A stretch of 64,000 bases of DNA, taken from NCBI GenBank assembly GCA_904063045.1, contig CAJFCJ010000029.1:531778-595777 (forward strand), read 5' to 3'. Position numbers and translations under genes: made by a program. Numbering within the stretch: the stretch's first letter is position 1; each line of letters begins with the position of its first letter. The notes below the pieces were generated by a model. The model did no database searches. It was not told the origin of the DNA and was given only the letters and a program-made list of their open reading frames with translations. Of this stretch, positions 34,982 through 60,700 are shown piece by piece. The DNA is from Dimorphilus gyrociliatus (taxonomy: Eukaryota; Animalia; Annelida).

Positions 34982-35128
34982 TCTGTTCTAGTTAGTTTAA
35001 CCGCTAACTGATAACACACTGTGTTATCTAATATGGTTAACAGTATTTTTGTCTTCAGAGAAAGCATTAAGCTTGCTTAAGTTTTCTCACGGGTTGACTT
35101 GGTATAGCAGTACCTCCAAGTTTGGCCC
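34982..35128 (+). pseudogene. U2: Displaced 3' part (nt 40-186) of host U2-A
   Basis: Identical to 27129-27275 and followed by the same downstream spacer. Confidence 0.95.
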
Positions 35129-38100
35129 ATTTTCTTCTACGGAAGAAAATTTCTACTCTAAAACAATAGCACATATAAGGGAAAAGAACCTCTTGTCCTT
35201 TTGAGGTTAAGTGGGATTTTCAGTACATTTATACAATTTATTTTTATTTATGTTCCAGAAATGGTCCACGCTACCGGGTAGTATGAAAAAAGCTTCTACG
35301 TCGGCATTATCATATTGCAGAAGAATCAAACCACAATTGCTTTCTTTCTTCATAACAAGAATTATAAATCAACGTTTCTTCAGCGCTTGAAACTCTGGAA
35401 GGCCAAGTGTGGACGGCGGAAAAATAATTTATTATTTGTATAATTATCTGGTGGACGTGTGGCATGTGGAGAAAAAGTGGCAGAAGTACACGTCGGTGAT
35501 TTACTATTCACTGCCCAATCTCCAGACATCTAACTGGAAAAAGCATTACAACTATTATTAGACGCTTCCAATCAAGTTAACACTCACACATGCCAATCCT
35601 GAACTCCCTCATCATGAAATTTTGGTTGTCATCTACGTCGTAGATGGTCTTGTCCTCTACTTCTAAATCGTAGTTGTGTTGGCGATGCCTCCAGTGGACA
35701 TAGTGGTAGATTAGAACTATCTTACGCGATTGGTTCTCGGTATTTTTCTGCGGTCAAAGGATCAATAAGCTTTCACAGGATTTCTCCTGGTTTCACTTGG
35801 TACTACATAACAACCAAGCAACGGCGGCGGCGTTTTGAAGGTTTCTATACACGCTCGCTATGTATTATTTCGAAATCCACATACCCTTTCACATTCGCGT
35901 TGTTAACGGTTCCATTGGACATATCTCTTGCGCGTCTATAGTTTTTGAATTTACCCTTTTTATCAAATTATTAGCGGGAAACAACGCATTGGTATTTAAC
36001 ACTCACATTAACAATAAGAAGCCTCTTCATAGTTCGGGTGATCATTGCTCTATCCTCCTAAAATGCACTATACAACACTCTTCCTCGAGGAACGAGTGCA
36101 TTTCTGAGCCTCCTTACTGATGAGTGGAATGTTATGGTCGCTCTCGTCTGCATATAATGTTCTGCGCTTTAGTCAATCCATGCTCATCTTCCGCACATTC
36201 TTTCATCTGCAAATTTGGTAGAACAATTCCCTTCGACGCTCATTCTTTCCTCTTTTCAATCAAGGTTCCAAACATATACATGATGGCTTAACCATTAATC
36301 AAATGTCTGTACGAACTATTATTGTCTGTCTCTTCTAACTCGTAATTACTTTGCATTCCTAAAAGCGATAATAGGGGTAGTTTAACGTTTGATTGATGTT
36401 GCTGAAATTCGTCATTCTGTTTGGACCACATCGGATTATTAGGTGACGGTGAAATAACTGATATTATTACCTTATCTCCTGATTAATGAATACGTCCTTT
36501 ACAATTCTACCAAAAGTTCTTTTTCTTCGGATTCGCGCGTTACTATTCCACCGTTGACTGGTTCCTTGCTCCTAATGGCCTATTGCCTTCATTAACCCGC
36601 CGTTGGCGCTTTTTTTCGCGCCGTTATTATGAAGTAGGCCATAATCAATTAAAATAAACAACCTTTTCACATTCCTCTATTTTAAAGGCTTCACAGGATA
36701 TATGTGTTGCGCTTTTATGATATTTCCAAAATGTCTTTTTTTAAAAGTACTAACGACAAACAACGCATTGGTATTCAACACTTACATTGCGAACAAGAAG
36801 CTCCTTCACACTTAAAATGAAGATTGCTCAATCCTAATATCGCGTTCAGGAAAAAGTCTTCTTTCAGGCTCGGATATATTATACGCCTCCTTATTCATCA
36901 GTCGAATGTTACGGCAACTCTCGTCTGTATTATGTATTGCGCCATGGCTAGTCGATGTTAATCTACACGTGTAAGATTTAAGATAATGCTCCTATTGGCA
37001 CGAGTACATTATGAGCCTTCCAATTAATGAGTCGAATGTTATAGTCACTCTCGTATGCATATAATGTATTGCGCCATGGCCAGTCGATGTTAATCTTACA
37101 CGTGTTCTTTTTACCGCAATTTCGTAGAACACTTCCCTTCAACGCTCACTCTTTCCTCTTTTCACTATCGGTTCCAAACATATAGAAGATAGCTTAGCCA
37201 TTAATTTAATGTCTTTAAAACTGTTGTTAGCCGCCAGTTTTAAGTCGTAATTGCTTTTGCAATCTCCATAGTGGTAATAGCGGTAGATTGAGGTGTTGTT
37301 GATTTTCCTGAAATTCGAGATTTTGTTCAGACTACATCAGATGTTTAAGGGAGACTACAAGGACTGATGTTTTACCTTATCTCCTGATTAAGAAATCAAT
37401 TGACTTTATAACAATTCTTCCAAAATTTCTGTTTATTGAGTTTCACACGCTAATTTTCCATCGTTCACGGGTCAGTTTCTTCAATATCCACTGTTAGCGC
37501 AGTTTTCCCGCCGTTATCTTTAAGTACATCGTCCATCATTTCTTAAGCCTCCGATTCGTTTTTGTTTTTAACTGTTCTACTGGACATGTCACTTGTTTGT
37601 TCCCTAACTTCTTTCGTTGAGATCTTTGGTTTCTCCAATTTCTTTCTTGCAGTTTGGTTTAGAAAGATACATCCGAAAATCAGTGTACTGCATATGATCA
37701 AAAGATAGAAATATAAATAAATAAAAAGTAAAAGTTTTATCAAACTGAAAATCAGGACCGTAATAATCACACCCTTGTTGAAAACCAACATTGAAGATTT
37801 TACAAATGTCTGTCGTCTATGAAGCAGAAAATTGCAAATTCTACAATGCAAATAATGATACGGAAAGAAAAGAGAGTTTCTTAGACCTAGTCTACATTTT
37901 GAATTTTCATTACCGTGCTTCTTCACTATCTAGAGGAAACGCCTTAGCACGAATGTTCAGCAATACAACACTATTTCTACCCGACAATGTACCGCTTGGC
38001 ACAAATTCAAGACACTTGTCGCACATACAAATCTACTTATAAACAGAGATTGTGCAAAATACGAAAAATTTACGTAATATATCGCAAGATTACCTCCATT

Positions 38101-39366
38101 ATCAGAACACAAACATCTATTTCTGTTCTCACCAACCCCAACAACTTCATTTCAGTCATAACGCGATTGGGCCTAGCTATAGCAAGAACTATCAACAGTA
38201 TCTTCATATGTTACGTGTATTGTCAGCCATTCACTTTTTTCCCTCGTCAATTCTTTTCACACTATTAGCCGTATTCTAGGCGTTATTATTCAGTCACTAC
38301 TAGATCATAACCCCTCTATTACCTTCATTGCTCATACACTGCAAAATATACTCTGGCTGTACGGAATGACCATTATGCCATTTTCTAATACTCTCACACT
38401 TCCGGCAATAAACTCCCTAATATCGCTCACATTTCCGAATTCTTTTTTTGGAATCTTAGTGGTAATGAACTAAAAAAGTTTCTTTGACCTCCACGTTGTC
38501 AAAGGTCAAAGTGTTGTAGTGTCTGCTTTAATTTCGATTTGTTCGTAATACAGGACAACCCCTTAAATTTCCTTTCATTCTTCGTAAATATAATTATATT
38601 TCAAACTATTAAAACTGGTGCACTTTTGACTACTTGGCGCACTATTTTTTACCGGAGTGATCCCTGCCTCCACTTCCAGTAGATATAAATGTATCGCCGA
38701 AATTTGTATCGCCCTTGTAACCCCTAGAAAAGACTGGAGTACAAACAAAACTTTTTATTGATGAGTCGGATAATTCGGTCTATCTGGTATCTATATACTG
38801 TAATTCTTTAAAGTCAAACTGTTCTAAATCGAATTTTATAAAGATTAATTACAAAATAACAGAATTCAAAAATAAAAAACCACTTAAATGAAACTTTAGA
38901 AAAAAAACCGAATGATAATCTTGATACAGTTAAAAATTTTTGAAGATTAAACTGTAAATTTCAAAAAGTATAAGTATCACTTCTTTCCTATTTCACTAAA
39001 TTTAAAGATAATATTAGTACACGAGAAAAAGGAATAATGACGCCATCTACCAGATAAATAACGACTGATAAATTGGAAAGATACGCCATCTACAGACATA
39101 AGCATCCGTTAAAAATGCCATCATACGCCATCTACAAATTACTGAATTTGCAAAAGACGCCGTCTACCGTTTGTAAAAGGAAACTTCAAAGTGCTACCAA
39201 ATTTTAAAAACAAAGCAGTTAGTGACCTATTCTCAATAATCTAGTCGTTCTAACATTTTTGAATTAGCAATGAAAAAATATTTCACAAAAATTCTAAATC
39301 AATGTGAGGCGAAAACCGCTCCGTGCGTTTATGAAAATAAGATATTACTACAAAAAGGTTCTAAAT
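35129..39366 (+). repeat. Long version of the U2 spacer, ending in a truncated U2 upstream region
   Basis: Shares both ends with the short spacer but has about 2.6 kb extra (about 35994-38611). It stops about 65 bp before the expected U2 start. Confidence 0.8.
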
Positions 39367-39986
39367 CCGCTAACGTCCCAAAGTAGGGCAGATACATCAG
39401 CAGAACAGCGCTTTTCAGGGCTACCAGGAGTTCCGGTTGCTGTAGCAGAGAGGGTGTCGCTGGATAGCTCCAATGGGAGCGGTCCGACATCCGGAGTGCC
39501 ATCGGATAACCCCCACCCGGGAGGTAGTCCGGCACAGAGGAGACCAACGGCTCGGGGAACGATGCCACCAACGACGCAGATGACGATGGGTGGGGCTGTA
39601 CAAAGTAACGACGGCTCCACTTTATCCGAGCTCATGGACAAGTCTCCTGTTCGGCGTGATGGTGAGAAGGAAGACGCGGCAAAGCAGGACGCGGGCTCTT
39701 TAGCTAGCGTCCCCGCTGAAGACAACGGCCTGGATTCCGGTCTGGCAGAGGGCGCTGCGGAGGATGAGGATGCTGGCTACATGGCGAATATGTTATGTGC
39801 GGCTGATGTGCGGCTGGCCTCTCAAGAACGTCTTCTCTGCCTTCCCGCGGCCCGACGTTCCTTCCCTCCTCGTACTTTGTTTATTCCTCCTGCCGATCCT
39901 GTGTGTGTGTGTGTGTGTGTGCCTGTTTCGGATAACCTCTCTAACTCTCCCATCTCCGTTCCCGTCACCTCTACACCTGTCTCGCG
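39367..39986 (+). mobile_element. Diverged 5' fragment of the same retrotransposon family (older subfamily)
   Basis: Encodes FSGLP...QMTMGGAVQSNDGSTLSELMDKSP...PVTSTPVSR. It has 48 extra codons relative to E1. The U2 module and everything past TPVSR are missing. Confidence 0.85.
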
Positions 39987-40436
39987 ACCTGATAAGGTCG
40001 ACACAATGGATAGAGAATTTCGGGAAGGAACCTTCAATGCCCCTTCGACTGCCGAATATTATAGCCTCACATGTAGCCAACACTGCCTTCATTAAGACAG
40101 GATTGGGATTCGAATTAAAATTACTGCTTTGCCATTCACTGGAGAAGAAGCATATTCGCCTTAATTTCCATAATTCACAGATTCGACAATAACCATTCAA
40201 CTACTTCCAGAAGTTGCGAGAACACAACCACGCAATGAATAAAATTAGAACTATTACAACTTATACTCTGATAACAATAATTACAGATATTAGTGAATTT
40301 GAATGAAAAAAAACAAAAAACAACATTATAAAGAGTTTCCGAAATGGTGCCTACGTCCTGCCCACACTAGACACGGAGACAATACTACCTAATAGGATGA
40401 AATCTCCGGTTGATACCATTCAGAAATATACTGTAT

Positions 40437-42239: not shown

Positions 42240-43709
42240 AAAAAAGAACAATAGGCCATTGGGAGCAAGGAACCAGTCAACGGTGGAATAGTAACGCGCG
42301 AATCCGAAGAAAAAGAACTTTTGGCAGAATTGCAATATAAAGGAAGTATTTATTAATCAGGAGATAAGGTAATAATATCAGTTATTTCACCGTCACCTAA
42401 TAATTCGATGTGGTCCAAACAGAATAATGAATTTCAGCAACATCAATCAAACTTTAAACTACCCCTATTATCGCTTTTAGGAATGCAAAGTAATTACGAG
42501 TTAGAAGAGACAGAAAACAATAGTTCGAACAGACATTTGATTAATGGTTAAGCTATCGTGTATATGTTTGGAATATTTAGTGAATTGAGGAAAGAGAGAG
42601 AGAGTTCAAGGGAATTGTTCTACCAAATTGCGGATGAAAGAACGCGCGGAGGATTAACATGGATTGACTAAAGCGCAGAACATTATATGCAGAGGAGAGT
42701 GATTATAACATTCAATACATCAAAAGGAGACGTATAATGTACTGATATCTGGAGATAGAATATCGTACAGTGGATTTTAGGAAGATAAAGCAACGATAAT
42801 CCGAACTATGAAGAGGCTTCTTGCTGTTAATGTAAGTGTTAAATACCAATGCGTTGTTTCCCGCTAATAATTTGATAAAAAGGGTAAATTCAAAAACTAT
42901 AGACGCGCAAGAGATATGTCCAATGGAACCGTTAACAACGCGAATGTGAAAGGGTATGTGGATTTCGAAATAATACATAGCGAGCGTGTATAGAAACCTT
43001 CAAAACGCCGCCGCCGTTGCTTGGTTGTTATGTAGTACCAAGTGAAACCAGGAGAAATCCTGTGAAAGCTTATTGATCCTTTGACCGCAGAAAAATACCG
43101 AGAACCAATCGCGTAAGATAGTTCTAATCTACCACTATGTCCACTGGAGGCATCGCCAACACAACTACGATTTAGAAGTAGAGGACAAGACCATCTACGA
43201 CGTAGATGACAACCAAAATTTCATGATGAGGGAGTTCAGGATTGGCATGTGTGAGTGTTAATTTGATTGGAAGCGTCTAATAATAGTTGTAATGCTTTTT
43301 CCAGTTAGATGTCTGGAGATTGGGCAGTGAATAGTAAATCACCGACGTGTACTTCTGCCACTTTTTCTCCACATGCCACACGTCCACCAAATAATTATAC
43401 AAATAATAAATTATTTTTCCGCCGTCCACACTTGGCCTTCCAGAGTTTCAAGCGCTGAAGAAACGTTGATTTATAATTCTTGTTATGAAGAAAGAAAGCA
43501 ATTGTGGTTTGATTCTTCTGCAATATGATAATGCCGACATAGAAGCTTTTTTCATACTACCCGGTAGCGTGGACCATTTCTGGAACATAAATAAAAATAA
43601 ATTGTATAAGTGTACTGAAAATCCCACTTAACCTCAAAAGGACAAGAGGTTCTTTTCCCTTATATGTGCTATTGTTTTAGAGTAGAAATTTTCTTCCGTA
43701 GAAGAAAAT
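42240..43709 (-). repeat. Inverted copy of the U2 downstream spacer (about 35129-36580)
   Basis: For example, 42261 GGGAGCAAGGAACCAGTCAACGG is the reverse complement of about 36550. The MYYFEIHIPF ORF appears at 35860 (+) and 42978 (-). Confidence 0.88.
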
Positions 43710-43856
43710 GGGCCAAACTTGGAGGTACTGCTATACCAAGTCAACCCGTGAGAAAACTTAAGCAAGCTTAATGCTTTCTCTGAAGACAAAAATACTGTTA
43801 ACCATATTAGATAACACAGTGTGTTATCAGTTAGCGGTTAAACTAACTAGAACAGA
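43710..43856 (-). pseudogene. U2: Displaced 3' part (nt 40-186) of host U2-A
   Basis: Reverse complement of 34982-35128. Confidence 0.95.
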
Positions 43857-44159
43857 TATATTTAAATGTATTATACAGGTAAAAGGAGGAGACAGTGTTT
43901 TTCAAATGCAGGATGAATGGCATAGAGGAAGTTAGGTAAACAAAAAAGGGGTAAAAGTGACATAGACGACGGGAGTTAAAGGCCATTGTGGACCAACAGG
44001 AACCGGCACATGAGTAACAAATAGCAGAATTAGGTAATAGTATGGTAGCAAGGGAAAAGGGGTAAATCCCAGTGACACAGGCACTTTACAATAAATGACG
44101 ACACCCTTAATATATCACAGACACATAACGAACGAATAAACAATTAATAGCCAACAATT

Positions 44160-47100
44160 TTAATGACCGTTAATGTGCGCGTCGTAGGCGTCCTTTGAGC
44201 CACGAATCGCTTCCGCCACGCACAGCTGGGACAGCATACCCCGGTAGGCGAACGCTATGCCCAGAGCCCGAAAAACCCTGGAGTTCCCCTTGCACCAGGC
44301 GCCCAAAGACCCAACAGCAAATGGTAGAATCTCTACTGCTTTGCCTTGTCCCTCCAGCTCCGTTTTCAAGACCGCGTACTTATTGACCTTCTCCTGGGCA
44401 GCACGAGCAAGGGCGCCAGGCCTCTCAAAGGGGACCGTGACGTCGATAAGCACCACCCTGTCATCCGCGCTCCTAATAACTATATCAGGGCGAAGGGCAG
44501 TGGAGGATTCGGGCAACGCCCTGTTTACCGTAATGGTGGAACCGGGCGCCAGGCGGGCACCTTTGACCAGACGATCCTGGATGGCGTTATGGCGATCGCC
44601 GTACAGGCCATACCCAGTACGGCAGTTGTTTAGGACATGCCGCACTGATTCCACTTGGAAGTGACAACGCCTGCAATCAGGCCTAACCCGGGCACTGTAT
44701 CTGGACTTGACTGCATTGATCCGGAGGAGACCCAACCGAGCCCGAAAGATGAATCGATAGTCCTTATACCGCAAGCCGAAGCCGGTGTAGAGGAAATGGT
44801 TGGAGACAGGGTGCAAGCAGGTGTCCTGAAAGGACCTGCCCTGCTCCGCCAATTTAACGAACTCTCTTACACTGAGCTCCGTAACCGCCGACCTAAGTAA
44901 TGGGAAAGGTTCGTGGGTGCGACGGATACGGATAGCTAAGGGTTCAAGGTTGCGTTCATCATCCCCAAACGACAATTCCTGCCAGTTGGATTGGACCTCG
45001 TGGCGAAATTGCGGCTGGTTTTGGTGCCAACTCCTACTCACCGTGGCGGTAATGGTAGGCGTAAGGGCGTCATCGAGGTGCCATTCAAGATTTATGGATT
45101 TATGCAAGCGCCTGGAAGCCGACCTAGTGACTGACATCACCGTCTGAGCGGAAGAGGAGGAAGAGGAGAAAGGAGGAGTCGTTGACCCATTAAGGTAAGA
45201 GGCCAAAACAACACCTGTAAGAGCGGTGCCGCGAGCCACTCTGGCCTTAGCGGCCTTAACGAGAGTTGCGCAGGCGATAAAGCGGATGGTAGGGTCCTCC
45301 GATTTAAGGAGTTGAAAAGTATGTCCTACACGGGCTATGTCAACCTCTACCCTAGTGGGGATTAGGCCGACACCGCCCATTTTAGCGGGAGCGGCAAAGA
45401 ACGACCTAGCGGCGTTGTTTGTGGTGGCTATGGCGGTACGAATAGCGCGAATAACCACCGAATCGAGGTCCGCTAGTTCCTCCTTAAGGAAACGGTGGGT
45501 TCGCAGTGCGAACTGAATACGGGGGAGAATGAAGGCCTTGATGGAGGACACCTTTTGCCAGGGCGCGAGGTTGGACTCCATAGTAAGCCGAAGAAGGGAG
45601 CGGATCCTCTCAATCACCCCATCATCCTTGAGAAGCTCCTTCCTAAAGCCAATGGGCGTGCCCAGATAGGTGTAGGTCTCCTCAAGGCCTAGCGCCTTAA
45701 TAGGTTCGTTAGCCACGAATAGGGGGGTCGGGTCGGCGACTCCACGATGGAGGCACAAGGTAGCGCATTTACGCGGAGCAAATTTTAGGTTTGCCAGACC
45801 AGCCGACCGCTCGGCAACATTGAGGAGGTGTTGCAGACCACGGCGGGAGTTTGCGACCACCACAAGGTCATCGGCATAGGCTAGGCCGCAAATGGATACG
45901 GACCTTAGGCCAAGGACAGCCGCCTGGGCGGCGATCTTGAACCCATCTCTGTCTTTGGAGGCGTTAACACTACGTAGAGCTCCCTCAAAGCAGAGATTAA
46001 AGAGGAAGGGGCTGAGACCGTCGCCCTGCCTAACACCTTTGTGGATGGAAATGGGTGCTGTGCAACCTTCCGTCGTGATAACCTCCGTAGTGGCGTTGGT
46101 GTATACGTTCCGGATAAGGTTAACGAGACTGGGCGGCACTCCTACGTGGGACAACATGTCGAAGATAACGCAATGGGGGATAGAGGGGAAGGCTTGCGCA
46201 ATATCAACGAATCCGAGGCAGATGCGCTTATCACTACGTTTGGCCTCGTCAAGCGCCGAGGTCAAGGCAAAGTTGTGCTCGAAGACACCGGGGGCCGTAG
46301 TAAACCCCCTTTGCTCCTTGCTAAGGATATCATTGTCTCTGGCCCATCTACTCAGACGCCGGGCCAGCAGACTACTAAAAAGTTTGTAGATGGTAGAGAG
46401 GAGGGCAATAGGCCTACAGTTGGCCGGCAGCGAAGGGTCGAGATCCTTTTTGGGGATCATTATAGTGCGAGACCGCTTCAGACAGGAGGGAATCTGTCCA
46501 TGTCGCCAGAACAACCTGTAAAAAGCCCTGAGGGTTAAGCCTTTCGGATCGAATTTCTTAAGATCCTTGTAGGTGATGCCGTCAAGACCGGGAGCAGAGT
46601 TGTTGGTTCGCTTAAGCTGGCCAACAATCTCAGCGCGGGATGGGGGACGGAGCAAGGGGTGATTAGGGTCGGTCAATTCTATGCCGTCGATGGTCCTACT
46701 TTCGAGGTTAAAGGTATCGGGGGTGAAAGCAGGGGGGATTTCATTGGCGAGTTGAACGTCCTCTGGGTCAGGCGGTGGGGCCGCGGCCGGAAGAAACTCC
46801 CTATCGGGAGACCACTGATATGAAGGAGGAGGTGGGGCGACCGATTCGATAAAGAAAGAGGTCATATCTTCAATGGAAGCAGAACACTTGGTCTCCTCAG
46901 GGTTAGCGATACGGCGGAAAGTGCTAGCCGGATTACGCTTGTAGGCCCTTTGGATATTAGTAGCCGCTTGCCATTGATTGTTAGCCGCATTCGGAGGGGG
47001 GCGAGCAAAGTTCCTATTCGCGAATCTATTACCAGTACCCTCATGCACCCTGGACTTGGCGTTGGAGATGGCGAGAACCCAGGCGTCGAAAACTTCTTCT

Positions 47101-47216
47101 ACGCGGGACCATTCGGACTGACTTCCAATAATCTTGGGGGCAAACTCAGTTAGGATAGCGGCAGCGAAACTCGAAAGTTGCTCCTCGCGTTCGCGTTCAA
47201 GCTGTTGATGGGACAC
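44160..47216 (-). CDS. Uninterrupted RT-CCHC-RLE frame of E2 (1018 codons, no zinc fingers, out of frame with the 5' ATG)
   Basis: ORF track. The frame opens at GTG, not ATG. The upstream ORF 47242-47889 stops three codons after the splice junction. Confidence 0.75.
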   Translation of the reverse strand: MSHQQLEREREEQLSSFAAAILTEFAPKIIGSQSEWSRVEEVFDAWVLAISNAKSRVHEGTGNRFANRNFARPPPNAANNQWQAATNIQRAYKRNPASTFRRIANPEETKCSASIEDMTSFFIESVAPPPPSYQWSPDREFLPAAAPPPDPEDVQLANEIPPAFTPDTFNLESRTIDGIELTDPNHPLLRPPSRAEIVGQLKRTNNSAPGLDGITYKDLKKFDPKGLTLRAFYRLFWRHGQIPSCLKRSRTIMIPKKDLDPSLPANCRPIALLSTIYKLFSSLLARRLSRWARDNDILSKEQRGFTTAPGVFEHNFALTSALDEAKRSDKRICLGFVDIAQAFPSIPHCVIFDMLSHVGVPPSLVNLIRNVYTNATTEVITTEGCTAPISIHKGVRQGDGLSPFLFNLCFEGALRSVNASKDRDGFKIAAQAAVLGLRSVSICGLAYADDLVVVANSRRGLQHLLNVAERSAGLANLKFAPRKCATLCLHRGVADPTPLFVANEPIKALGLEETYTYLGTPIGFRKELLKDDGVIERIRSLLRLTMESNLAPWQKVSSIKAFILPRIQFALRTHRFLKEELADLDSVVIRAIRTAIATTNNAARSFFAAPAKMGGVGLIPTRVEVDIARVGHTFQLLKSEDPTIRFIACATLVKAAKARVARGTALTGVVLASYLNGSTTPPFSSSSSSAQTVMSVTRSASRRLHKSINLEWHLDDALTPTITATVSRSWHQNQPQFRHEVQSNWQELSFGDDERNLEPLAIRIRRTHEPFPLLRSAVTELSVREFVKLAEQGRSFQDTCLHPVSNHFLYTGFGLRYKDYRFIFRARLGLLRINAVKSRYSARVRPDCRRCHFQVESVRHVLNNCRTGYGLYGDRHNAIQDRLVKGARLAPGSTITVNRALPESSTALRPDIVIRSADDRVVLIDVTVPFERPGALARAAQEKVNKYAVLKTELEGQGKAVEILPFAVGSLGAWCKGNSRVFRALGIAFAYRGMLSQLCVAEAIRGSKDAYDAHINGH

Positions 47217-47898
47217 GTGCGCAGGGGGAGGGGACGAGGGGTCAGTGAGGAGACCTCAACGAAACCGGATCAGCAGTAGAAGAAGAGGAAGAGAGGACGG
47301 CAGAGCGGGCACCCAGAACCGAAGAGGAAGAAGATGCAGCCGTAGTAGCAGTGGTAGTAGAGGTAGTAGAGGTAGAAGAGGGGGAGGGAGAACCGGTAAT
47401 GTCCATAACACGCGAGACAGGTGTAGAGGTGACGGGAACGGAGATGGGAGAGTTAGAGAGGATATCCGAAACAGGCACACACACACACACAGGATCGGCA
47501 GGGGGAATAAACAAAGAACGAGGAGGGAAGGAGCGTCGGGCCGCGGGAAGGCAGAGAAGACGTTCTTGAGAGGCCAGCCGCACATCAGCCGCACATAACA
47601 TATCCGCCATGTATCCAGCATCCTCGTCCTCTGCAGCGCCCACTGCCGGACCAAAGTCCAGGCCGTTGTCTTCCGCGGGGACGCTAGCTAAAGAGCCCGC
47701 ATCCTGCTTTGCCGCGTCTTCCATCTCGTCATCACGCCGAACAGGAGACTTGTCCATGAGCTCAGATAGAGTGGAGCCGTCGTTACTTTGTACAGCCCTA
47801 CCCATCGTCATCTGCTCCTCCGGTAGCCCTGAAAAGGGCTGTTTTGTAACTGTTCCACCTTGGGAGGTCTTAAGTGAGGCCTTCTCCATTGAGAAGAA

Positions 47899-48047
47899 GG
47901 GCCGAACTTGGAGGTACTGCTAGACCAAGTCAACCCAAGGATTCTTCGAAGCAAGCTTCTAGGAACCCAGACCACACAAAAATCCCGTAATCGTTATTAA
48001 GGCAACCCAATGGATTGCCAGCTAGCGATTAAACTAACTAGAACAGA
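47899..48047 (-). ncRNA. U2: Element-borne U2-B module (nt 40-188) of E2, promoterless, preceded directly by the E3 3' end
   Basis: TCTGTTCTAGTTAGTTTAATCGCTAGC...GGCCC follows ...TTTAAATAAC of E3. Confidence 0.9.
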
Positions 48048-49879
48048 GTTATTTAAATGTATTATACAGGTAAAAGGAGGAGACAGTGTTTTTCAAATGC
48101 AGGATGAATGGCATAGAGGAAGTTAGGTAAACAAAAAGAAGGGGTAAAAGTGACATAGACGACAGGAGTTAAAGGCCAATGTGGACCAACAGGAACCGGC
48201 ACATGAGTAACAAATAGCAGAATTAGGAAATAGTATGGAAGCAAGGGAAAAGGGGTAAATCCCAGTGACAGAGGCACTTTACAATAATTTACGACACCCT
48301 TAATATATCACAGACACATAACGAACGAATAAACAATTAATAGCCAGTAATTTTAATGACCGTTAATGTGCGCGTCGTAGGCGTCCTTTGAGCCACGAAT
48401 CGCTTCCGCCACGCACAGCTGGGACAGCATACCCCGGTAGGCGAACGCTATGCCCAGAGCCCGAAAGACCTTGGAGTTCCCCCTGCACCAGGCGCCCAAA
48501 GAACCAACAGCAAATGGTAGAATCTCTACTGCCTTGTCTTGTCCCTCCAGCTCCGTTTTCAAGACCGCATACTTGTTGATCTTCTCCTGGGCAGCGCGAG
48601 CAAGGGCGCCAGGCCTTTCAAAGGGGACCGTGACGTCGATCAGCACCACCCTGTCATCCGCGCTCCTAATCACTATATCAGGGCGAAGGGCAGTGGAGGA
48701 TTCGGGCAACGCCCTGTTTACCGTAATGGTGGAACCGGGCGCCAGGCGGGCACCTTTGACCAGACGATCCTGGATGGCGTTATGGCGATCACCGTACAGG
48801 CCATACCCAGTACGGCAGTTGTTTAGGACATGCCGCACTGATTCCACTTGGAAGTGACAACGCCTGCAATCAGGCCTAACCCGGGCACTGTATCTGGACT
48901 TGACTGCATTGATCTGGAGAAGACCCAACCGAGCCCGAAAGATGAATCGGTAGTCCTTATACCGCAAGCCGAAGCCGGTGTAGAGGAAATGGTTGGAGAC
49001 AGGGTGCAAGCAGGTGTCCTGAAAGGACCTGCCCTGCTCCGCCAATTTAGCGAACTCTCTTACATTGAGCTCCGTGACCGCCGACCCTCAACGAAACCGG
49101 ATCAGCAGTAGAAGAAGAGGAAGAGAGGACGGCAGAGGGGGCATCCAGAACCGAAGAGGAAGAAGATGCAGCCGTAGTAGCAGTGGTAGTAGAGGTAGTA
49201 GAGGTAGAAGAGGGGGAGGGAGAACCGGTAATGTCCATAACACGCGAGACAGGTGTAGAGGTGACGGGAACGGAGATGGGAGAGTTAGAGAGGTTATCCG
49301 AAACAGGCACACACACACACACAGGATCGGCAGGGGGAATAAACAAAGAACGAGGAGGGAAGGAGCGTCGGGCCGCGGGAAGGCAGAGAAGACGTTCTTG
49401 AGAGGCCAGCCGCACATCAGCCGCACATAACATATCCGCCATGTATCCAGCATCCTCGTCCTCTGCAGCGCCCACTGCCGGACCAAAGTCCAGGCCGTTG
49501 TGTTCCGCGGGGACGCTAGCTAAAGAGCCCGCATCCTGCTTTGCCGCGTCTTCCATCTCGTCCTCACGTCGAACAGGAGACTTGTCCATGAGCTCAGATA
49601 GAGAGGAGCCGTCGTTACTTTGTACAGCCCTGCCCATCGTCATCTGCTCCTCCGGTAGCCCTGAAAAGGGCTGTTTTGTAACTGTTCCACCTTGGGAGGT
49701 CTTAAGTGAGGCCTTCTCCATTGAGAAGAAGGGCCGAACTTGGAGGTACTGCTAGACCAAGTCAACCCAAGGATTCTTCGAAGCAAGCTTCTAGGAACCC
49801 AGACCACACAAAAATCCCGTAATCGTTATTAAGGCAACCCAATGGATTGCCAGCTAGCGATTAAACTAACTAGAACAGA
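48048..49879 (-). mobile_element. Retrotransposon copy E3, spliced isoform 2 (lacks the equivalent of 29800-33931), non-autonomous, 1832 bp
   Basis: The junction GAGG|GTCGGC at 49086/49085 joins the same donor to the CTTAG acceptor. RT is absent. The RLE-coding tail and 3' UTR are retained. Confidence 0.92.
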
Positions 49880-49918
49880 TACTACACTTTGATCTTAGCC
49901 AAAAGGCCGAGAAGCGAT
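49731..49918 (-). ncRNA. U2: Chimeric full-length U2 gene (host nt 1-39 plus U2-B of E3)
   Basis: 188 nt with the host upstream region at 49919 onward. Two substitutions versus E1 U2-B, both at unpaired positions. Confidence 0.92.
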
Positions 49919-51760: not shown

Positions 51761-52077
51761 GTTATTTAAATGTATTATACAGGTAAAAGGAGGAGACAGT
51801 GTTTTTCAATTGCAGGATGAATGGCATAGAGGGAGTTAGGTAAACAAAAAAGAGGGGTATAAGTGACATAGACGACAGGAGTTAAAGGCCAATGTGGACC
51901 AACAGGAACCGGCACATGAGAACAAATAGCAGAATAGGATTGATGTAGAAGCAAGGGAAAAGGGGTAAATCCCAGTGACACAGGCACTTTACAATAATTT
52001 ACGACACCCTTAACATATCACAGACACATAACAGACGAAAAAACGAATAAACAGTTGATAGCCAGTACATTTTTATT

Positions 52078-55000
52078 TTAATGACCGTTAATGTGCGCGT
52101 CGTAGGCGTCCTTTGAGCCACGAATCGCTTCCGCCACGCACAGCTGGGACAGCATACCCCGGTAAGCGAACGCTATGCCCAGAGCCCGAAAGACCTTGGA
52201 GTTCCCCCTGCACCAGGCGCCCAAAGAACCAACAGCAAATGGTAGAATCTCTACTGCCTTGCCTTGTCCCTCCAGCTCAGTTTTTAGGACCGCATACTTG
52301 TTGATCTTCTCCTGGGCAGCGCGAGCAAGGGCGCCAGGCCTCTCAAAGGGGACCGTGACGTCGATCAGCACCACCCTGTCATCCGCGCACCTAATCACTA
52401 TGTCAGGGCGAAGGGCAGTGGAGGATTCGGGCAACGTCCTGTTTACCGTAATGGTGGAACCGGGCGCCAGGCGGGCACCTTTGACCAGACGATCCTGGAT
52501 GGCGTTATGTCGATCACCGTACAGGCCATACCCAGTACGGCAGTTGTTTAGAACATGCCGCACTGATTCCACTTGGAAGTGGCACCGCCTGCAATCAGGC
52601 CTAACCCGGGCACTGTATCTGGACTTGACGGCATTGGTCTGGAGAAGACCCAGCCGAGCCCGAAAGATGAATCGGTAGTCCTTATACCGCAAGCCGAAGC
52701 CGGTGTAAAGGAAATGGTTGGAGACAGGGTGCAAGCAGGTGTCCTGGAAGGACCTGCCCTGCTCCGCCAATTTAGCGAACTCTCTAACATTGAGCTCCGT
52801 GACCGCCGACCTAAGTAATGGGAAAGGTTCGTGGGTGCGACGGATACGGATAGCTAGGGGTTCGAGGTTGCGTTCGTCATCCCCAAACGACAATTCCTGC
52901 CAGTTGGATTGGACCTCGTGGCGAAATTGCGGCTGGTTCTGGTGCCAACTCCTACTCACCGTGGCGGTAATGGTAGGCGTAAGGGCGTCATCAAGGTGCC
53001 ATTCAAGGTTTATAGATTTGTGCAAGCGCCTGGAGGCCGACCTAGTGACTGACATCACCGTCTGAGCGGAAGAGGAGGAAGAGGAGAAAGGAGGAGTCGT
53101 TGACCCGTTGAGGTAAGAGGCCAAAACGTCCCCTGTAAGAGCGGTGCCGCGGGCCACTCTGGCCTTAGCGGCCTTAACAAGAGTTGCGCAGGCGATAAAG
53201 CGGATGGTAGGGTCCTCCGATTTGAGGAGTTGAAAAGTGTGTCCCACACGGGCTATGTCCACCTCTACCCTAGTGGGGATTAGGCCTACACCGCCCATTT
53301 TAGCGGGAGCGGCAAAGAACGACCTAGCGGCGTTGTTTGTGGTGGCCATGGTGGTGCGGATAGCGCGAATAACCATCGAATCGAGGTCCGCTAGTTCCTC
53401 CTTAAGGAAACGGTGGGTTCGCAGTGCGAATTGAATACGGGGGAGAATGAAGGCCTTGATGGAGGACACCTTTTGCCAGGGCGCGAGGTTGGACTCCATA
53501 GTAAGCCGAAGAAGGGAGCGGATCCTCTCAATCACCCCATCATCCTTGAGAAGCTCCTTCCTGAAGCCAATGGGCGTGCCCAGATAGGTGTAGGTCTCCT
53601 CAAGGCCTAGCGCCTTAATAGGTTCGTTAGCCACGAATAGGGGGGTCGGGTCGGCGACTCCACGATGGAGGCACAAGGTAGCGCATTTACGCGGAGCAAA
53701 TTTTAGGTTTGCCAGACCCGCCGACCGCTCGGCAACATTGAGGAGGTGTTGCAGACCACGGCGAGAGTTTGCGACCACCACAAGGTCATCGGCATAGGCT
53801 AGACCGCAAATGGATACGGACCTTAGACCTAGGACAGCCGCCTGAGCGGCGATCTTGAACCCATCTCTGTCTTTTGAGGCGTTAACGCTACGTAGAGCTC
53901 CCTCAAAGCAGAGATTAAAGAGGAAGGGGCTGAGACCGTCGCCCTGCCTAACACCTTTGTGGATGGAAATGGGTGCTGTGCATCCTTCCGTCGTGATAAC
54001 CTCCGTAGTGGCGTTGGTATATACATTCCGGATAAGGTTAACGAGACTGGGCGGCACTCCTACAAGGGACAACATGTCGAAGATAACGCAATGGGGGATA
54101 GAGGGGAAGGCTTGCGCAATATCGACGAATCCTAGGCAGATGCGTTTATCACTACGTTTGGCCTCGTCAAGGGCCGAGGTCAAGGCGAAGTTATGCTCGA
54201 AGACACCGGGGGCCGTAGTAAATCCCCTTTGCTCCTTGCTAAGGATATCATTGTCTCTGGCCATCTACTCAGACGCCGGGCCAGCAGACTACTAAAAAGT
54301 TTGTAAATGGTAGAGAGGAGGGCAATAGGCCTACAGTTGGCCGGCAGCGAAGGGTCGAGATCCTTTTTGGGGATCATTATAGTGCGAGACCGCTTCAGAC
54401 AGGAGGGAATCTGTCCATGTCGCCAGAACAACCTATAGAAAGCCCTGAGGGTTAAGCCTTTCGGATCGAATTTCTTAAGATCCTTGTAGGTGATGCCGTC
54501 AAGACCGGGAGCAGAGTTGTTGGTTCGCTTAAGCTGGCCGACAATCTCAGCGCGGGATGGGGACGGAGCAAGGGGTGGTTAGGGTCGGTCAATTCTATGC
54601 CGTCGATGGCCCTGCTTTCGAAGTTAAAGGTATCGGGGGTGAGAGCAGGGGGGATTTCATTGGCGAGTTGAACGTCTTCTGGGTCAGGCGGTGGGGCCGC
54701 GGCCGGAAGAAACTCCCTGTCGGGAGACCACTGATATGAAGGAGGAGGAGGGGCGACCGATTCAATAAAGAAAGAGGTCATATCTTCAATGGAAGCGGAA
54801 CACTTGGTCTCCTCAGGGTTAGCGATACGGCGGAAAGTGCTAGCCGGATTACGCTTGTAGGCCCTTTGGATATTAGTAGCCGCTTGCCATTGATTGTTAG
54901 CCGCATTCGGAGGGGGGCGAGCAAAGTTCCTATTCGCGACTCTACCGCCAGCACTCTCATGCACCCTGGACTTGGCGTTGGAAATGGCGAGAACCCAGGC

Positions 55001-57578
55001 GTCGAAAACTTCTTCCACGCGGGACCATTCGGACTGACTTCCAATAATCTTGGGGGCAAACTCAGTTAGGATAGCGGCAGCGAAACCCGAAAGTTGCTCC
55101 TCGCGTTCCCGTTCAAGCTGTTGATGGGACACGTGCGCAGGAGGAGGGGACGGGGGGTCGGGGAGGAGACTGTTATTATTATTATCATTAGTAACCTCGT
55201 GGTCACGGGACACCGACCGATCCAACCGCGGAGGGGGAGACCAATCTCGAGCGGGAGAGCGGGGACAAGAAAGCGGGGGGGGAGAAGAGGAAGAAGGGAC
55301 GAGAGAACTGGGGATAATGTCAGCGTCCTCGTCGTAGGAACCATCCCTCTCCGTATCGCACGAAGGCGGCGGGGGGGAATCGGGGACCACCAGGGGCGCC
55401 ACCGGTGACGAGTCGATACCGGGGGCAAGGGTAGGCCTAGGTGGGGAGGGATTAGAGGCGACGCGTTCTTCACGGATAAGTTGACTTAGGCTTGTGGAAG
55501 AAGGGCGCGGGGGAGGCGGGGGAGACATCACGGAGGCAGGACCAGCGGCCGAGTCCGGAGAGCTCAACCCCTTATTAACTTTAGGCGGGGAAATCTGACC
55601 TTTAGGCGGGGAAATCCGCTCTTTAGGAGGGGAAATCCGAGCTTGGGCAGAGGGGTTCGGACCTGTAGTTGGGGGGAACGAACTGTCTTGGTCGGAGCAC
55701 CGACTTTAGGAGGAGGTTTCCCAGCCTCCGTCGGTCGTGCAAGGGTGGCCCTAGAAGAGGAGGAAGAAACAACCGAACCCGAATCTGGGATCGCACTGGC
55801 CGGGGGTATTTTTGGGACGAGTGCTGAGGAGGAGATAACCTTACGGGGACGGGGTTTCCTGATCTTACTATTATTTTTGTTTTTAGAAGGCGACGGCGGC
55901 AGAGTGGCGAGCGGCAAGAGAGCCTTTGCGGAAGGAAGAGCCGGGGGGGAGATTTGACCACTTTCGCAAACGAGCCATTCGGCAGAGCGGGAAGAGTGGG
56001 AATGGTGGCGGGGGAAGGCCCAACAGAGATGCGTTGGACAATGGGCTGGGAAGGGGGGGACTGGGATGCAGCGGCAGGAGAGTCCGAGTCATCTAAATAG
56101 ATGGACGAGGGATGACCCCCATGATCGCGGTTGAAATGTCTCTTCACAATCCCCAGTGAACGGAAGAAATGGCGACAGCCCCGACACATAAAGGTCACTT
56201 GCTTAGCGTGGACGGAGCGGATGTGGGCTGAAATCCTGTTGGTAGTGCCGGAAAAGTTGTTGCAAACAGGGCACATTCTATCCAGAAGAGGATAGGTTAA
56301 CGGGATGTCGGTAGGGAGAAGGGGAACGGTAGGAGGAGACGCGGCGGAGACATTAGCTCCGGAAATGCACACGCAGGGCGACACCTTGCAAGGACATTGC
56401 GCGGACACAGAAGCAACGACCGGCGGAGGCCTAGGCGCGTTGGGAGGAATTGTCACACGGTCTGAGTCAGCCGCTGCCTGATTAGGACAGGGGGCCGGCG
56501 CAGGCCTACTCGTGGGAGAAAGATTCTTCTCACAGACAGGGGCAGCGGAGGGATTAGCGGTTGGCTGAGGCCTATCTGTGGGAGCGTTAACCGGAGTACC
56601 GGCCACGCTAACCGAAGTCCCACAGGATGATTTTGAATTATCAACAGGTACAATGGCGGACGAGGGAGGAACAGCGGCGACAACAGCAGAGGCACCACCA
56701 ACCGAACGACGCCGTTCGGAGTTGTAAAAAGTTTGCGTAGCAACCCTTATGGGGGCTATTGCGGGTGCAGGAGAAGAAGCAGCCTTCTTCTTCTTGGCCG
56801 CGAGGGAACGAGTATAGATAGGGGAACGGTCAGGTACAGGGACAGCAACAGTAACAACAGATGGGGCGGGACGGGACTTGGACGGGGGACGAGAAGGAGG
56901 GACAGACACAGAAACATGACCGCCAGGAACAGCCGTACTCACCCTCGACGAAACCGGATCAGCAGTAGCAGAAGAGGAAGAGAGGACGGCAGAGGGGGCA
57001 CCCAGAACCGAAGAGGAAGAAGATGCAGCCGTAGTAGCAGTGGTAGTAGTAGTAGAGGTAGTAGAGGTAGAAGAGGGGGAGGGAGAACCGGTAATGTCCA
57101 TAACACGCGAGACAGGTGTAGAGGTGACGGGAACGGAGATGGGAGAGTTGTTGTCCGAAACAGGCACACACACACACACAGGATCGGCAGGAGGAGTAAA
57201 CAAAGAACGAGGAGGGAAGGAGCGTCGGGCCGCGGGAAGGCAGAGAAGACGTTCTTGAGAGGCCAGCCGCACATCAGCCGCACATAACATATCCGCCATG
57301 TATCCAGCATCCTCGTCCTCTGCAGCGCCCACTGCCGGACCAAAGTCCAGGCCGTTGTCTTCCGCGGGGACGCTAGCTAAAGAGCCCGCATCCTGCTTTG
57401 CCGCGTCTTCCATCTCGTCATCACGTCGAACAGGAGACTCGTCCATGAGCTCAGATAGAGAGGAGCCGTCGTTACTTTGTACAGCCCTGCCCATCGTCAT
57501 CTGCTCCTCCGGTAGCCCTGAAAAGGGCTGTTTTGTAACTGTTCCACCTTGGGAGGTCTTAAGTGAGGCCTTCTCCAT
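52078..57578 (-). CDS. E4 polyprotein (ZF-RT-RLE), interrupted by 1-nt indels
   Basis: ORF pieces 55623-57578, 54452-55567 and 52078-54264 match E1. Confidence 0.9.
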
Positions 57579-57587
57579 TGAGAAGAA

Positions 57588-57736
57588 GGGCCGAACTTGG
57601 AGGTACTGCTAGACCAAGTCAACCCGAGGATTCTTTGAAGCAAGCTTCTAGGAACCCAGACCACACAAAAATCCCGTAATCGTTATTAAGGCAACCCAAT
57701 GGATTGCCAGCTAGCGATTAAACTAACTAGAACAGA
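57588..57736 (-). ncRNA. U2: Element-borne U2-B module (nt 40-188) of E4, preceded directly by the E5 3' end
   Basis: Same sequence as 29006-29154. Confidence 0.9.
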
Positions 57737-60700
57737 GTTATTTAAATGTATTATACAGGTAAAAGGAGGAGACAGTGTTTTTCAATTGCAGGATGAATGG
57801 CATAGAGGGAGTTAGGTAAACAAAAAAGAGGGGTATAAGTGACATAGACGACAGGAGTTAAAGGCCAATGTGGACCAACAGGAACCGGCACATGAGAACA
57901 AATAGCAGAATAGGATTGATGTAGAAGCAAGGGAAAAGGGGTAAATCCCAGTGACACAGGCACTTTACAATAATTTACGACACCCTTAACATATCACAGA
58001 CACATAACAGACGAAAAAACGAATAAACAGTTGATAGCCAGTACATTTTTATTTTAATGACCGTTAATGTGCGCGTCGTAGGCGTCCTTTGAGCCACGAA
58101 TCGCTTCCGCCACGCACAGCTGGGACAGCATACCCCGGTAAGCGAACGCTATGCCAGAGCCCGAAAGACCTTGGAGTTCCCCCTGCACCAGGCGCCCAAA
58201 GAACCAACAGCAAATGGTAGAATCTCTACTGCCTTGCCTTGTCCCTCCAGCTCAGTTTTTAGGACCGCATACTTGTTGATCTTCTCCTGGGCAGCGCGAG
58301 CAAGGGCGCCAGGCCTCTCAAAGGGGACCGTGACGTCGATCAGCACCACCCTGTCATCCGCGCACCTAATCACTATGTCAGGGCGAAGGGCAGTGGAGGA
58401 TTCGGGCAACGTCCTGTTTACCGTAATGGTGGAACCGGGCGCCAGGCGGGCACCTTTGACCAGACGATCCTGGATGGCGTTATGTCGATCACCGTACAGG
58501 CCATACCCAGTACGGCAGTTGTTTAGAACATGCCGCACTGATTCCACTTGGAAGTGGCACCGCCTGCAATCAGGCCTAACCCGGGCACTGTATCTGGACT
58601 TGACGGCATTGGTCTGGAGAAGACCCAGCCGAGCCCGAAAGATGAATCGGTAGTCCTTATACCGCAAGCCGAAGCCGGTGTAAAGGAAATGGTTGGAGAC
58701 AGGGTGCAAGCAGGTGTCCTGGAAGGACCTGCCCTGCTCCGCCAATTTAGCGAACTCTCTAACATTGAGCTCCGTGACCGCCGACCTAAGTAATGGGAAA
58801 GGTTCGTGGGTGCGACGGATACGGATAGCTAGGGGTTCGAGGTTGCGTTCGTCATCCCCAAACGACAATTCCTGCCAGTTGGATTGGACCTCGTGGCGAA
58901 ATTGCGGCTGGTTCTGGTGCCAACTCCTACTCACCGTGGCGGTAATGGTAGGCGTAAGGGCGTCATCAAGGTGCCATTCAAGGTTTATAGATTTGTGCAA
59001 GCGCCTGGAGGCCGACCTAGTGACTGACATCACCGTCTGAGCGGAAGAGGAGGAAGAGGAGAAAGGAGGAGTCGTTGACCCGTTGAGGTAAGAGGCCAAA
59101 ACGTCCCCTGTAAGAGCGGTGCCGCGGGCCACTCTGGCCTTAGCGGCCTTAACAAGAGTTGCGCAGGCGATAAAGCGGATGGTAGGGTCCTCCGATTTGA
59201 GGAGTTGAAAAGTGTGTCCCACACGGGCTATGTCCACCTCTACCCTAGTGGGGATTAGGCCTACACCGCCCATTTTAGCGGGAGCGGCAAAGAACGACCT
59301 AGCGGCGTTGTTTGTGGTGGCCATGGTGGTGCGGATAGCGCGAATAACCATCGAATCGAGGTCCGCTAGTTCCTCCTTAAGGAAACGGTGGGTTCGCAGT
59401 GCGAATTGAATACGGGGGAGAATGAAGGCCTTGATGGAGGACACCTTTTGCCAGGGCGCGAGGTTGGACTCCATAGTAAGCCGAAGAAGGGAGCGGATCC
59501 TCTCAATCACCCCATCATCCTTGAGAAGCTCCTTCCTGAAGCCAATGGGCGTGCCCAGATAGGTGTAGGTCTCCTCAAGGCCTAGCGCCTTAATAGGTTC
59601 GTTAGCCACGAATAGGGGGGTCGGGTCGGCGACTCCACGATGGAGGCACAAGGTAGCGCATTTACGCGGAGCAAATTTTAGGTTTGCCAGACCCGCCGAC
59701 CGCTCGGCAACATTGAGGAGGTGTTGCAGACCACGGCGAGAGTTTGCGACCACCACAAGGTCATCGGCATAGGCTAGACCGCAAATGGATACGGACCTTA
59801 GACCTAGGACAGCCGCCTGAGCGGCGATCTTGAACCCATCTCTGTCTTTTGAGGCGTTAACGCTACGTAGAGCTCCCTCAAAGCAGAGATTAAAGAGGAA
59901 GGGGCTGAGACCGTCGCCCTGCCTAACACCTTTGTGGATGGAAATGGGTGCTGTGCATCCTTCCGTCGTGATAACCTCCGTAGTGGCGTTGGTATATACA
60001 TTCCGGATAAGGTTAACGAGACTGGGCGGCACTCCTACAAGGGACAACATGTCGAAGATAACGCAATGGGGGATAGAGGGGAAGGCTTGCGCAATATCGA
60101 CGAATCCTAGGCAGATGCGTTTATCACTACGTTTGGCCTCGTCAAGGGCCGAGGTCAAGGCGAAGTTATGCTCGAAGACACCGGGGGCCGTAGTAAATCC
60201 CCTTTGCTCCTTGCTAAGGATATCATTGTCTCTGGCCCATCTACTCAGACGCCGGGCCAGCAGACTACTAAAAAGTTTGTAAATGGTAGAGAGGAGGGCA
60301 ATAGGCCTACAGTTGGCCGGCAGCGAAGGGTCGAGATCCTTTTTGGGGATCATTATAGTGCGAGACCGCTTCAGACAGGAGGGAATCTGTCCATGTCGCC
60401 AGAACAACCTATAGAAAGCCCTGAGGGTTAAGCCTTTCGGATCGAATTTCTTAAGATCCTTGTAGGTGATGCCGTCAAGACCGGGAGCAGAGTTGTTGGT
60501 TCGCTTAAGCTGGCCGACAATCTCAGCGCGGGATGGGGGACGGAGCAAGGGGTGGTTAGGGTCGGTCAATTCTATGCCGTCGATGGCCCTGCTTTCGAAG
60601 TTAAAGGTATCGGGGGTGAGAGCAGGGGGGATTTCATTGGCGAGTTGAACGTCTTCTGGGTCAGGCGGTGGGGCCGCGGCCGGAAGAAACTCCCTGTCGG

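Follow-up and report, generated by a model that had tools for sequence, protein, structure and literature searches.

Spliced integrated retrotransposed elements (SpIREs) of the mammalian retrotransposon L1 are genomic copies in which a single donor (G98U99) has been joined to one of three acceptors (622, 790, and 976), and the splicing of L1 has been shown by reverse transcription polymerase chain reaction and by assays to lower retrotransposition (Larson et al., 2018; PMC5860796). They have been read as evolutionary dead ends and as a sign that splicing limits the element (PMC5860796). The short internally deleted elements (SIDEs) of R2 and R2/R1 are non-autonomous derivatives of site-specific elements with a restriction-like endonuclease (RLE), and have been ascribed to template jumps or non-homologous recombination (Eickbush and Eickbush, 2012; PMC3414825). 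Utopia is a retrotransposon without long terminal repeats (non-LTR) that is specific for the U2 small nuclear RNA (snRNA) gene (Kojima and Jurka, 2015; PMC4640811). An element of the Utopia type is described here from Dimorphilus gyrociliatus, in a 64,000-nucleotide (nt) stretch of contig CAJFCJ010000029.1 (assembly GCA_904063045.1, positions 531,778 to 595,777 of the forward strand; hereafter the window), where two internally deleted copies, E2 and E3, are probably DNA copies of two alternatively spliced RNAs of the element, made with one donor and two acceptors.

The end of the window is the end of the contig and lies inside an array of U2 genes. Nine matches to U2 snRNA (Rfam) occur in the window and were sorted out by self-comparison and by alignment of all U2 pieces; three U2 repeat units, with a period of ~1.88 kb, carry the element, which is inserted at U2 position 39/40 and has a GC content of 55% against ~30% in the AT-rich host. 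The uninterrupted gene and the five copies are as follows, with a slash marking a boundary here and below.
27090-27282, plus strand: uninterrupted U2 snRNA gene, the reference for the target site (...GTGTAGTA/TCTGTTCT...)
29006-34981, plus strand: E1, full-length copy of 5,976 nt with a U2-like 3' module, a single open reading frame (ORF), and a 3' untranslated region (UTR)
43857-48047, minus strand: E2, putative isoform-1 copy of 4,191 nt, without E1 29800-31571
48048-49879, minus strand: E3, putative isoform-2 copy of 1,832 nt, without E1 29800-33931
51761-57736, minus strand: E4, full-length copy of 5,976 nt, with zero substitutions relative to E1
57737-63708, minus strand: E5, full-length copy of 5,972 nt, head-to-tail with and upstream of E4, with zero substitutions relative to E1
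Each copy opens with its own U2-like 3' module (~75% identity to positions 40-192 of real U2), so that U2 positions 1-39 followed by this module read as a whole U2. The 3' ends of all five copies read ...AAATAAC, except that of E2 (...AAATATA), and each is followed by TCTGTTCTAGTT, which corresponds to U2 position 40 or, in E3 and E5, to the start of the U2-like module of the next element.

The two deletions share their 5' breakpoint and are described by the following sites.
29797-29805, plus strand: putative common 5' splice site AGG/GTGAGT, cut at 29799/29800, after ORF codon 212
31548-31571, plus strand: putative acceptor 1, with a branch-like heptamer TACTAAT (A at -19), an A/T-rich tract, and AACAG/
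33909-33931, plus strand: putative acceptor 2, with CACGAAC (A at -18) followed by CCTTTCCCATTACTTAG/
47253-47254, minus strand: E2 junction GAGG/TCTCC, where E2 reads ...GTTGAGG/TCTCCTC with zero filler
49085-49086, minus strand: E3 junction GAGG/GTCGGC, where E3 reads ...GTTGAGG/GTCGGCGG with zero filler
At the corresponding places E1 reads CGAGG/GTGAGT, ...TTACTAATGATAATAATAATAACAG/TCTCC (boundary 31571/31572), and ...CCTTTCCCATTACTTAG/GTCGGC (boundary 33931/33932), and the sequence of acceptor 2 is kept in E2. The window holds one copy of each junction. An initial annotation of this DNA had placed the break of both copies at GAGG/GTGAGT, exactly and without filler, with E2 resuming after AACAG (31571) and E3 after CTTAG (33931); a direct check agrees with this base for base, and the junctions are also seen in a five-copy alignment and in contigs of two public sequencing runs (X1 and X2, see below). 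The lengths it gave for the removed stretches, 1772 and 4132 nt, hold as assembly coordinates, but the true excised lengths are 1,775 nt (E2) and 4,136 nt (E3) once the C's missing from E1 at four C-runs are restored. The placement of the junctions is ambiguous by 1 nt in E2 and by 3 nt in E3, and a GT..AG placement is possible in both. Its reading of the copies as spliced isoforms is favored by the sequence statistics and the lineage analysis given below, the isoforms being seen as DNA and the excision itself inferred.

The common breakpoint is one of the two GTRAGT sites in the 5,976 nt of the E1 sense strand, and its GTGAGT ranks second among the 340 GT dinucleotides of that strand when these are scored with a generic 5' splice-site matrix. 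Acceptor 1 stands among the top 3 of 232 AG sites both by branch match and by A+T content; one of the two occurrences of TACTAAY in the element is found there, and the A/T richness at this place is the highest of its region. The introns of a neighboring RhoGEF gene (four to five, delimited by eye, 63-108 nt long) start with GTAAGT, GTGAGT, or GTATTA and end with ...GCGCAG, ...TTTAACAG, ...GTATAG, or ...CAATAG. By sequence, the donor and acceptor 1 appear to resemble functional host splice sites, with acceptor 2 merely average. In simulation, 0.5% of random deletions could be placed as GT..AG, and the chance that two GT..AG deletions would also have a common 5' breakpoint (of ~5,800 positions) is far below 1e-6. 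A second consensus donor, ACG/GTGAGT, is present at 33783-33788, 148 nt upstream of acceptor 2, and no copy or contig was seen to use it. Group II-like self-splicing was rejected on the boundary sequences GTGAGT...AG, and spliced-leader trans-splicing was set aside, since none is reported for the host (PMC7854359).

Judging from their substitutions, E2 and E3 arose recently, each from a different active lineage, and neither of these is the lineage of E1, E4, and E5. Near the junctions, the lineages are marked by positions 29773 and 29795 (G and C in E1, T at both in E2 and E3) and by 31579, 31581, 31588, 31599, and 33956, where E2 or E3 has another base than E1. Within the coding part retained in both (E1 33933-34661), E2 and E3 differ at 7.2% of synonymous and 1.3% of non-synonymous sites, which gives a ratio of non-synonymous to synonymous divergence (dN/dS) of 0.18. 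Similarly, the part of E2 that spans the reverse transcriptase (RT) and the RLE has 901 stop-free codons with a proportion of synonymous differences (pS) from E1 of 0.118 and a dN/dS of 0.07, and E3 compared with E1 gives a dN/dS of 0.09. Because the endonuclease remnant of E3 cannot work alone, this mark of purifying selection must have arisen in full-length ancestors. Derivation of E3 from E2 was rejected, as the GT is gone from the E2 junction and the copies differ by substitutions biased towards synonymous sites. Since E2 and E3 belong to different lineages, the donor at 29799/29800 would have been used at least twice and independently, and this double use across lineages provides the strongest argument for splicing over random deletion. 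The 5' part of the element (29006-29799, with the U2-like module and codons 1-212) is 3-4 times less diverged between the lineages of E1, E2, and E3 than the stretch 33932-34981 (1.0-1.7% vs. 3.0-5.6% substitutions), and its few coding changes are not biased towards synonymous sites (dN/dS 0.6-1.3), which suggests that the 5' ends have been homogenized or are constrained at the RNA or DNA level rather than at the protein level.

The effect of the two deletions on the coding capacity depends on the structure of the intact element, which contains one ORF of ~1,833 codons; this begins with the ATG at 29164, three bases past the U2-like module (29006-29161), and ends at 34661. The ORF encodes two C2H2 zinc fingers (30468-30620 in E1), an RT domain (RVT_1, E=3.7e-29, about 32367-33140 in E1), and a C-terminal CCHC motif with a PD..D..K endonuclease, in which C731/C734/H743/C748, P793-D794, D808, and K826/K829 are invariant in an alignment of eight sequences including six relatives. 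The initial annotation had seen several ORFs in the element; this picture did not survive, as it was distorted by homopolymer errors in E1, and a true ORF1/ORF2 structure was rejected. Over ~6 kb, E1, E4, and E5 show zero substitutions, and they differ solely where a C or G run is 1 nt shorter, each such contraction occurring in one copy only. E1 lacks one C at each of four C-runs (30247, 30681, 31459, and 31823), all four of which are complete in E4 and E5; contigs from all four public runs restore the missing C at three of the sites, as do those of the other runs at 30681, where X3 has no contig, and the open segments of E1 overlap exactly at these four positions. The element is taken to have a single long ORF because the frame changes of E1 coincide with C-run undercalls that are absent from E4, E5, and the run contigs. 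Statements on the frame come from counted alignment columns. The run contractions of E1, E4, and E5 are, from this pattern, long-read homopolymer errors that split the single ORF into apparent pieces, one of which is the annotated 374-amino acid (aa) gene product P0073. The assembly is presumably a PacBio assembly of D. gyrociliatus. The homopolymer errors and short local introns of the window agree with the host genome paper (PMC7854359).

Since the donor follows codon 212 and both acceptors lie at codon position 3, both products are shifted in frame, and the predicted open frames are the following.
47245-47889, minus strand: truncated ORF of E2, with 212 codons and 3 past the junction (215 aa)
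49050-49721, minus strand: truncated ORF of E3, with 212 codons and 12 past the junction (224 aa)
44163-47255, minus strand: residual open frame of E2, with 1,031 codons covering the linker, RT, CCHC, and RLE
Early stops after each junction had been expected by the initial annotation, as had the loss of the zinc fingers in E2 and of the fingers and RT in E3, and both points are confirmed, the latter by the domain positions: the C2H2 fingers fall in both excised stretches, and the RT domain falls in the longer (E3) excision only. The residual frame of E2 is out of frame with the 5' ORF, and its first Met is codon 130. Both products would consequently be non-autonomous, with E3 lacking zinc fingers and RT, and with E2 lacking zinc fingers and having RT and endonuclease out of frame. 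An exact-protein look-up of the two truncated ORFs and of both 901-aa RT ORFs in public assemblies found none on record, and a homology search with the 224-aa E3 product matched the two proteins of its own contig only and no junction-bearing transcript assembly.

The E1 region (29100-35000) was also compared with contigs of four public sequencing runs (X1-X4), of which X1 is of unknown kind and the others are probably DNA. Short-read-derived contigs of X1 and X2 contain the joints 29798>31571 and 29798>33931, labeled "GT..AG (cut +1)", at depths of 32.9 (X1) and 430.9 (X2) for the E2 junction and of 61.6 (X1) and 438.3 (X2) for the E3 junction; X3 and X4 yielded neither. For the middle part of E2, the X2 contig and the E2 of the window each show 58 differences relative to E1, and the two agree at 11 of 11 listed positions. 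Because both joints are present in contigs of X1 and X2, the shortened copies exist as DNA and were not created by errors of this assembly. An artefact of long-read assembly might otherwise be suspected from the frequent homopolymer undercalls in the assembly, the position of the array at a contig end, and a copy mix that differs sharply between runs; for the junctions themselves this explanation is refuted, it could apply only to the physical neighborhood of the copies, and as an account of E2 and E3 it is hardly credible. In X2, E2- and E3-type sequence has a depth of ~435, and the stretch found only in full-length copies has a depth of 20, in a form that carries 45 extra nt at 30831; in X3 and X4, all copies are full-length and lie head to tail (depths 27 and 46). 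This run-to-run difference could stem from polymorphic insertions or different array haplotypes in the culture, from differences in library type, or from merging of haplotypes at the contig end.

Several observations weigh against a splicing origin of E2 and E3. Splicing is read here from DNA copies, and from two events only, and acceptor 2 is an ordinary site with a pyrimidine fraction of 0.71 (rank 43 of 232). The putative introns of the element are 1.8 and 4.1 kb long vs. 63-108 nt for the local host introns, and in D. gyrociliatus the median intron measures 66 bp and splicing favors short introns (PMC7854359); excision of 1.8-4.1 kb would be inefficient in such a host, which is consistent with rare products. 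The two junctions of X2 (431 and 438) are level with fragment 39401-39986 (434), which occurs once in the window, so that repeated insertion is unsupported; these equal depths suggest one genomic copy of each junction, and each junction is represented by a single sequence lineage. In X1, the junctions have depths of 33 and 62 vs. 74 for the full-length copy, and the E1-type contigs are interrupted at 31600 and 33957, each one base beyond the last difference specific to E2 (31599) or E3 (33956); the X1 junction contigs are most likely derived from E2 and E3 and, even if X1 were RNA, would show transcription of these copies and not splicing of the full-length element. Finally, the junctions have microhomologies of 1 nt (E2) and 3 nt (E3), as are also found in end-joining deletions, and X2 alone contains three rare joints without GT..AG (29173>34977, 29183>32692, and 29237>32364; depth 10-17, anchors 24-30 nt).

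These last observations, together with the ordinary quality of acceptor 2, could fit deletions at the DNA level, through end joining or replication slippage in two full-length insertions, with the resemblance to splicing arising by chance or from a fragile site at 29799. Such an origin is very unlikely, as GT..AG would fit so few random deletions and here fits two, whose common breakpoint is a GTRAGT site, of which the 6 kb hold just two; in addition, acceptor 1 has a perfect branch heptamer at -19, and the copies come from two different lineages. The initial annotation had named breakpoints of other deleted copies as a check on its reading, and the three rare X2 joints do lie outside GT..AG, but they do not use the donor, have other 5' breakpoints with short anchors, and reach 2-4% of the junction depth. 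Their 5' sides lie 12-76 nt past the U2-like module; there is probably a second, less frequent process of deletion or template jumping, and the joints may come from template jumps or be chimeric contigs with weak anchoring. A jump of the RT within or between templates during target-primed reverse transcription, made twice to the same position because of, for example, an RNA structure or end near 29799, is likewise conceivable for E2 and E3, given that R2-type reverse transcriptases jump in vitro and in vivo and that such jumps have been proposed as one origin of R2 SIDEs (PMC3414825), and the rare X2 joints with 5' ends clustered at 29173-29237 would fit this process. Nevertheless, nothing about RT jumping would favor departure directly 3' of an AG and landing directly 5' of GTGAGT, on two occasions and in separate lineages, and the junctions contain zero filler or non-templated bases, all of which makes this origin highly improbable.

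The hallmarks of retrotransposition that the family allows to be checked are present in both shortened copies, namely a complete 5' module, a complete 3' end, and a canonical target junction; poly(A) and target-site duplications are not left by this family. E2 is complete at both ends, with the U2-like module at the 5' end, and leads into U2 positions 40-192 at 43703-43856, and E3 occupies the 39/40 site of the U2 gene rebuilt by E2, with U2 positions 1-39 upstream at 49880-49918. The copies form the head-to-tail pairs E5-E4 and E3-E2, and the upstream member of each (E5 and E3) inserted later, because it is seated in the 39/40 site rebuilt by the downstream member. The loss of introns through cDNA is a classical route, and a spliced cDNA could have undergone recombination with a full-length copy of its own lineage that was already resident, erasing the "intron" in place with no insertion in trans. 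Neither the window nor the four runs showed a full-length member of the E2 or E3 lineage, each junction has a single-copy-like depth in X2, and the E3-E2 tandem mirrors the full-length E5-E4 tandem, all of which would agree with such a conversion. It requires two separate events in adjacent copies, however, and site-specific RLE elements are known to mobilize internally deleted RNAs, as in the R2 SIDEs (PMC3414825); we regard conversion as unlikely, while noting that it and target-primed reverse transcription of a spliced RNA are indistinguishable from sequence.

For the splicing origin, which we consider the likely one, the following course may be proposed, in which we infer the splicing itself, the polymerase, and the route of integration. 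The full-length RNA would be a read-through transcript of RNA polymerase II (Pol II) from the promoter of the U2 gene, running through the U2-like module into the single ORF, a proposal made because no promoter of the element's own is visible and the ATG lies 3 nt past the module. The host spliceosome would occasionally cut this RNA at its first strong 5' splice site, AGG/GTGAGT after codon 212, and join it to one of the two AG sites 1.8 or 4.1 kb downstream. The spliced RNAs would retain both element ends, namely the 5' U2-like module and the 3' UTR required by the RT, and would be reverse-transcribed and placed in the usual target, U2 39/40. The simplest way would be target-primed reverse transcription with the protein of a full-length element; alternatively, the last step could be replacement of a resident copy by the spliced cDNA. 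Mobilization in trans would be a necessity for E3 only, which has no RT, and E2 keeps an open RT-endonuclease frame. That splicing throttles the element, by analogy with L1, is speculation, and so is a role of the short copies as "U2-repair" passengers. Splicing could also be part of the expression program, with isoform 1 serving as a subgenomic bicistronic RNA for an acidic, Ser/Thr-rich 215-aa N-terminal protein and a re-initiated finger-less RT-endonuclease, which seems very unlikely; if this were true, E2-type copies could still supply or use RT in cis, and the element would be an snRNA-promoter-driven retrotransposon with retrovirus-like alternative splicing, located inside the gene of the RNA that selects its own branch points.

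The U2 units of the window are arranged in two inverted arms, 27090-35135 (plus strand) and 43703-64000 (minus strand), around a 6.6-kb spacer that is bounded by a 967-nt inverted repeat (97%; 35136-36102 and 42736-43702) and contains a 2.85-kb direct duplication. An isolated GC-rich fragment (39304-40095, plus strand; core 39401-39986) lies in this AT-rich spacer and has 91% identity to E1 29207-29636, in the N-terminal region of the ORF, with a 145-nt extra segment and neither element end. It is open as a 263-codon frame, is annotated publicly as a 254-aa gene (P0074), and was found in all four runs, its depth in X1 being ~9x the full-length value; possible interpretations are a relic, a domesticated piece, or a donor of the N-terminal region.

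By target site and architecture, and leaving its placement in an RT tree aside, the element is of the Utopia type. As in Utopia, the U2 sequence on the 3' side begins with TCTGTTCT... (about nt 39/40), N-terminal zinc fingers are followed by RT and a C-terminal CCHC motif with a PD..D/ExK endonuclease, insertions occur in tandem, and several lineages are present within one U2 array (Kojima and Jurka, 2015; PMC4640811). A further common trait is "intact" U2 genes upstream of insertions, as described by the authors for Phytophthora (PMC4640811). The best database relatives of the present element have only 34-35% identity and are mostly from arthropods, and U2 lies beside the element in two of the three loci of relatives that were fetched, a spider locus and a metagenome contig, which hold the closest relatives at the protein level. 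U2 or U2-like sequences are found directly upstream of or between the copies of the relatives (L001 at 1761-1953, 8250-8442, and 10743-10936; L002 at 1-125), and two weaker U2 matches in L001 score 71 bits, equal to the chimeric U2 between the tandem copies in the window; the U2-like 5' module may therefore be widespread in this branch of Utopia. The Utopia paper lists no annelid or other lophotrochozoan host and does not describe spliced or internally deleted copies (PMC4640811), and a literature search found no earlier report of spliced copies of the Utopia, NeSL, or R2 type.

Like the L1 SpIREs, E2 and E3 are genomic non-LTR copies that lack precisely a GT..AG-bounded stretch, with one donor and several acceptors, and their products are crippled, the 5' UTR/ORF1 class of L1 relying on protein in trans (PMC5860796). 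The initial annotation had cited spliced L1 integrants in mammals as a precedent, and the literature bears it out (PMC5860796). Unlike L1, the present element is site-specific, with an RLE of the Utopia/NeSL type, a single ORF, and no poly(A) tail or target duplication visible at the junctions described here, and it probably depends on the promoter of the U2 gene rather than on an internal one. The excision in L1 takes the 5' UTR and the start of ORF1, whereas here most of the coding region is removed (1.8 and 4.1 kb), E2 and E3 keep a U2-like module that rebuilds the disrupted gene, and splicing is deduced from two events in DNA. Earlier work on spliced L1 copies was reportedly carried out by Belancio et al. 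Similarly to the SIDEs of R2 and R2/R1, E2 and E3 derive from a site-specific RLE element by internal deletion, are non-autonomous, and keep the 5' module, the 3' end recognized by RT, and the normal target site (PMC3414825). In contrast to the origins ascribed to R2 SIDEs, those of E2 and E3 would lie in splicing, and both copies appear to be single and young, with coding sequence still marked by recent purifying selection and not by long neutral decay. R2 is a co-transcript of RNA polymerase I and, to our knowledge, is not spliced.

E2 and E3 can thus with good reason, though not with certainty, be regarded as a SpIRE-like case in a new element clade, and annotators of this assembly may take its apparent multi-ORF structure as the product of homopolymer errors. 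If confirmed at the RNA level, the two copies would be the first known sign that the spliceosome acts on a site-specific endonuclease element of the R2/NeSL/Utopia group, and the SpIRE phenomenon, described for mammalian L1, would also cover an invertebrate element from another clade. Internally deleted derivatives could then arise otherwise than by template jumps. The finding, if true, would also bear on how Utopia is transcribed, for which Pol II read-through from the U2 promoter is the likely answer, and on whether the Utopia RT can act in trans when an RNA retains nothing but the two element ends.

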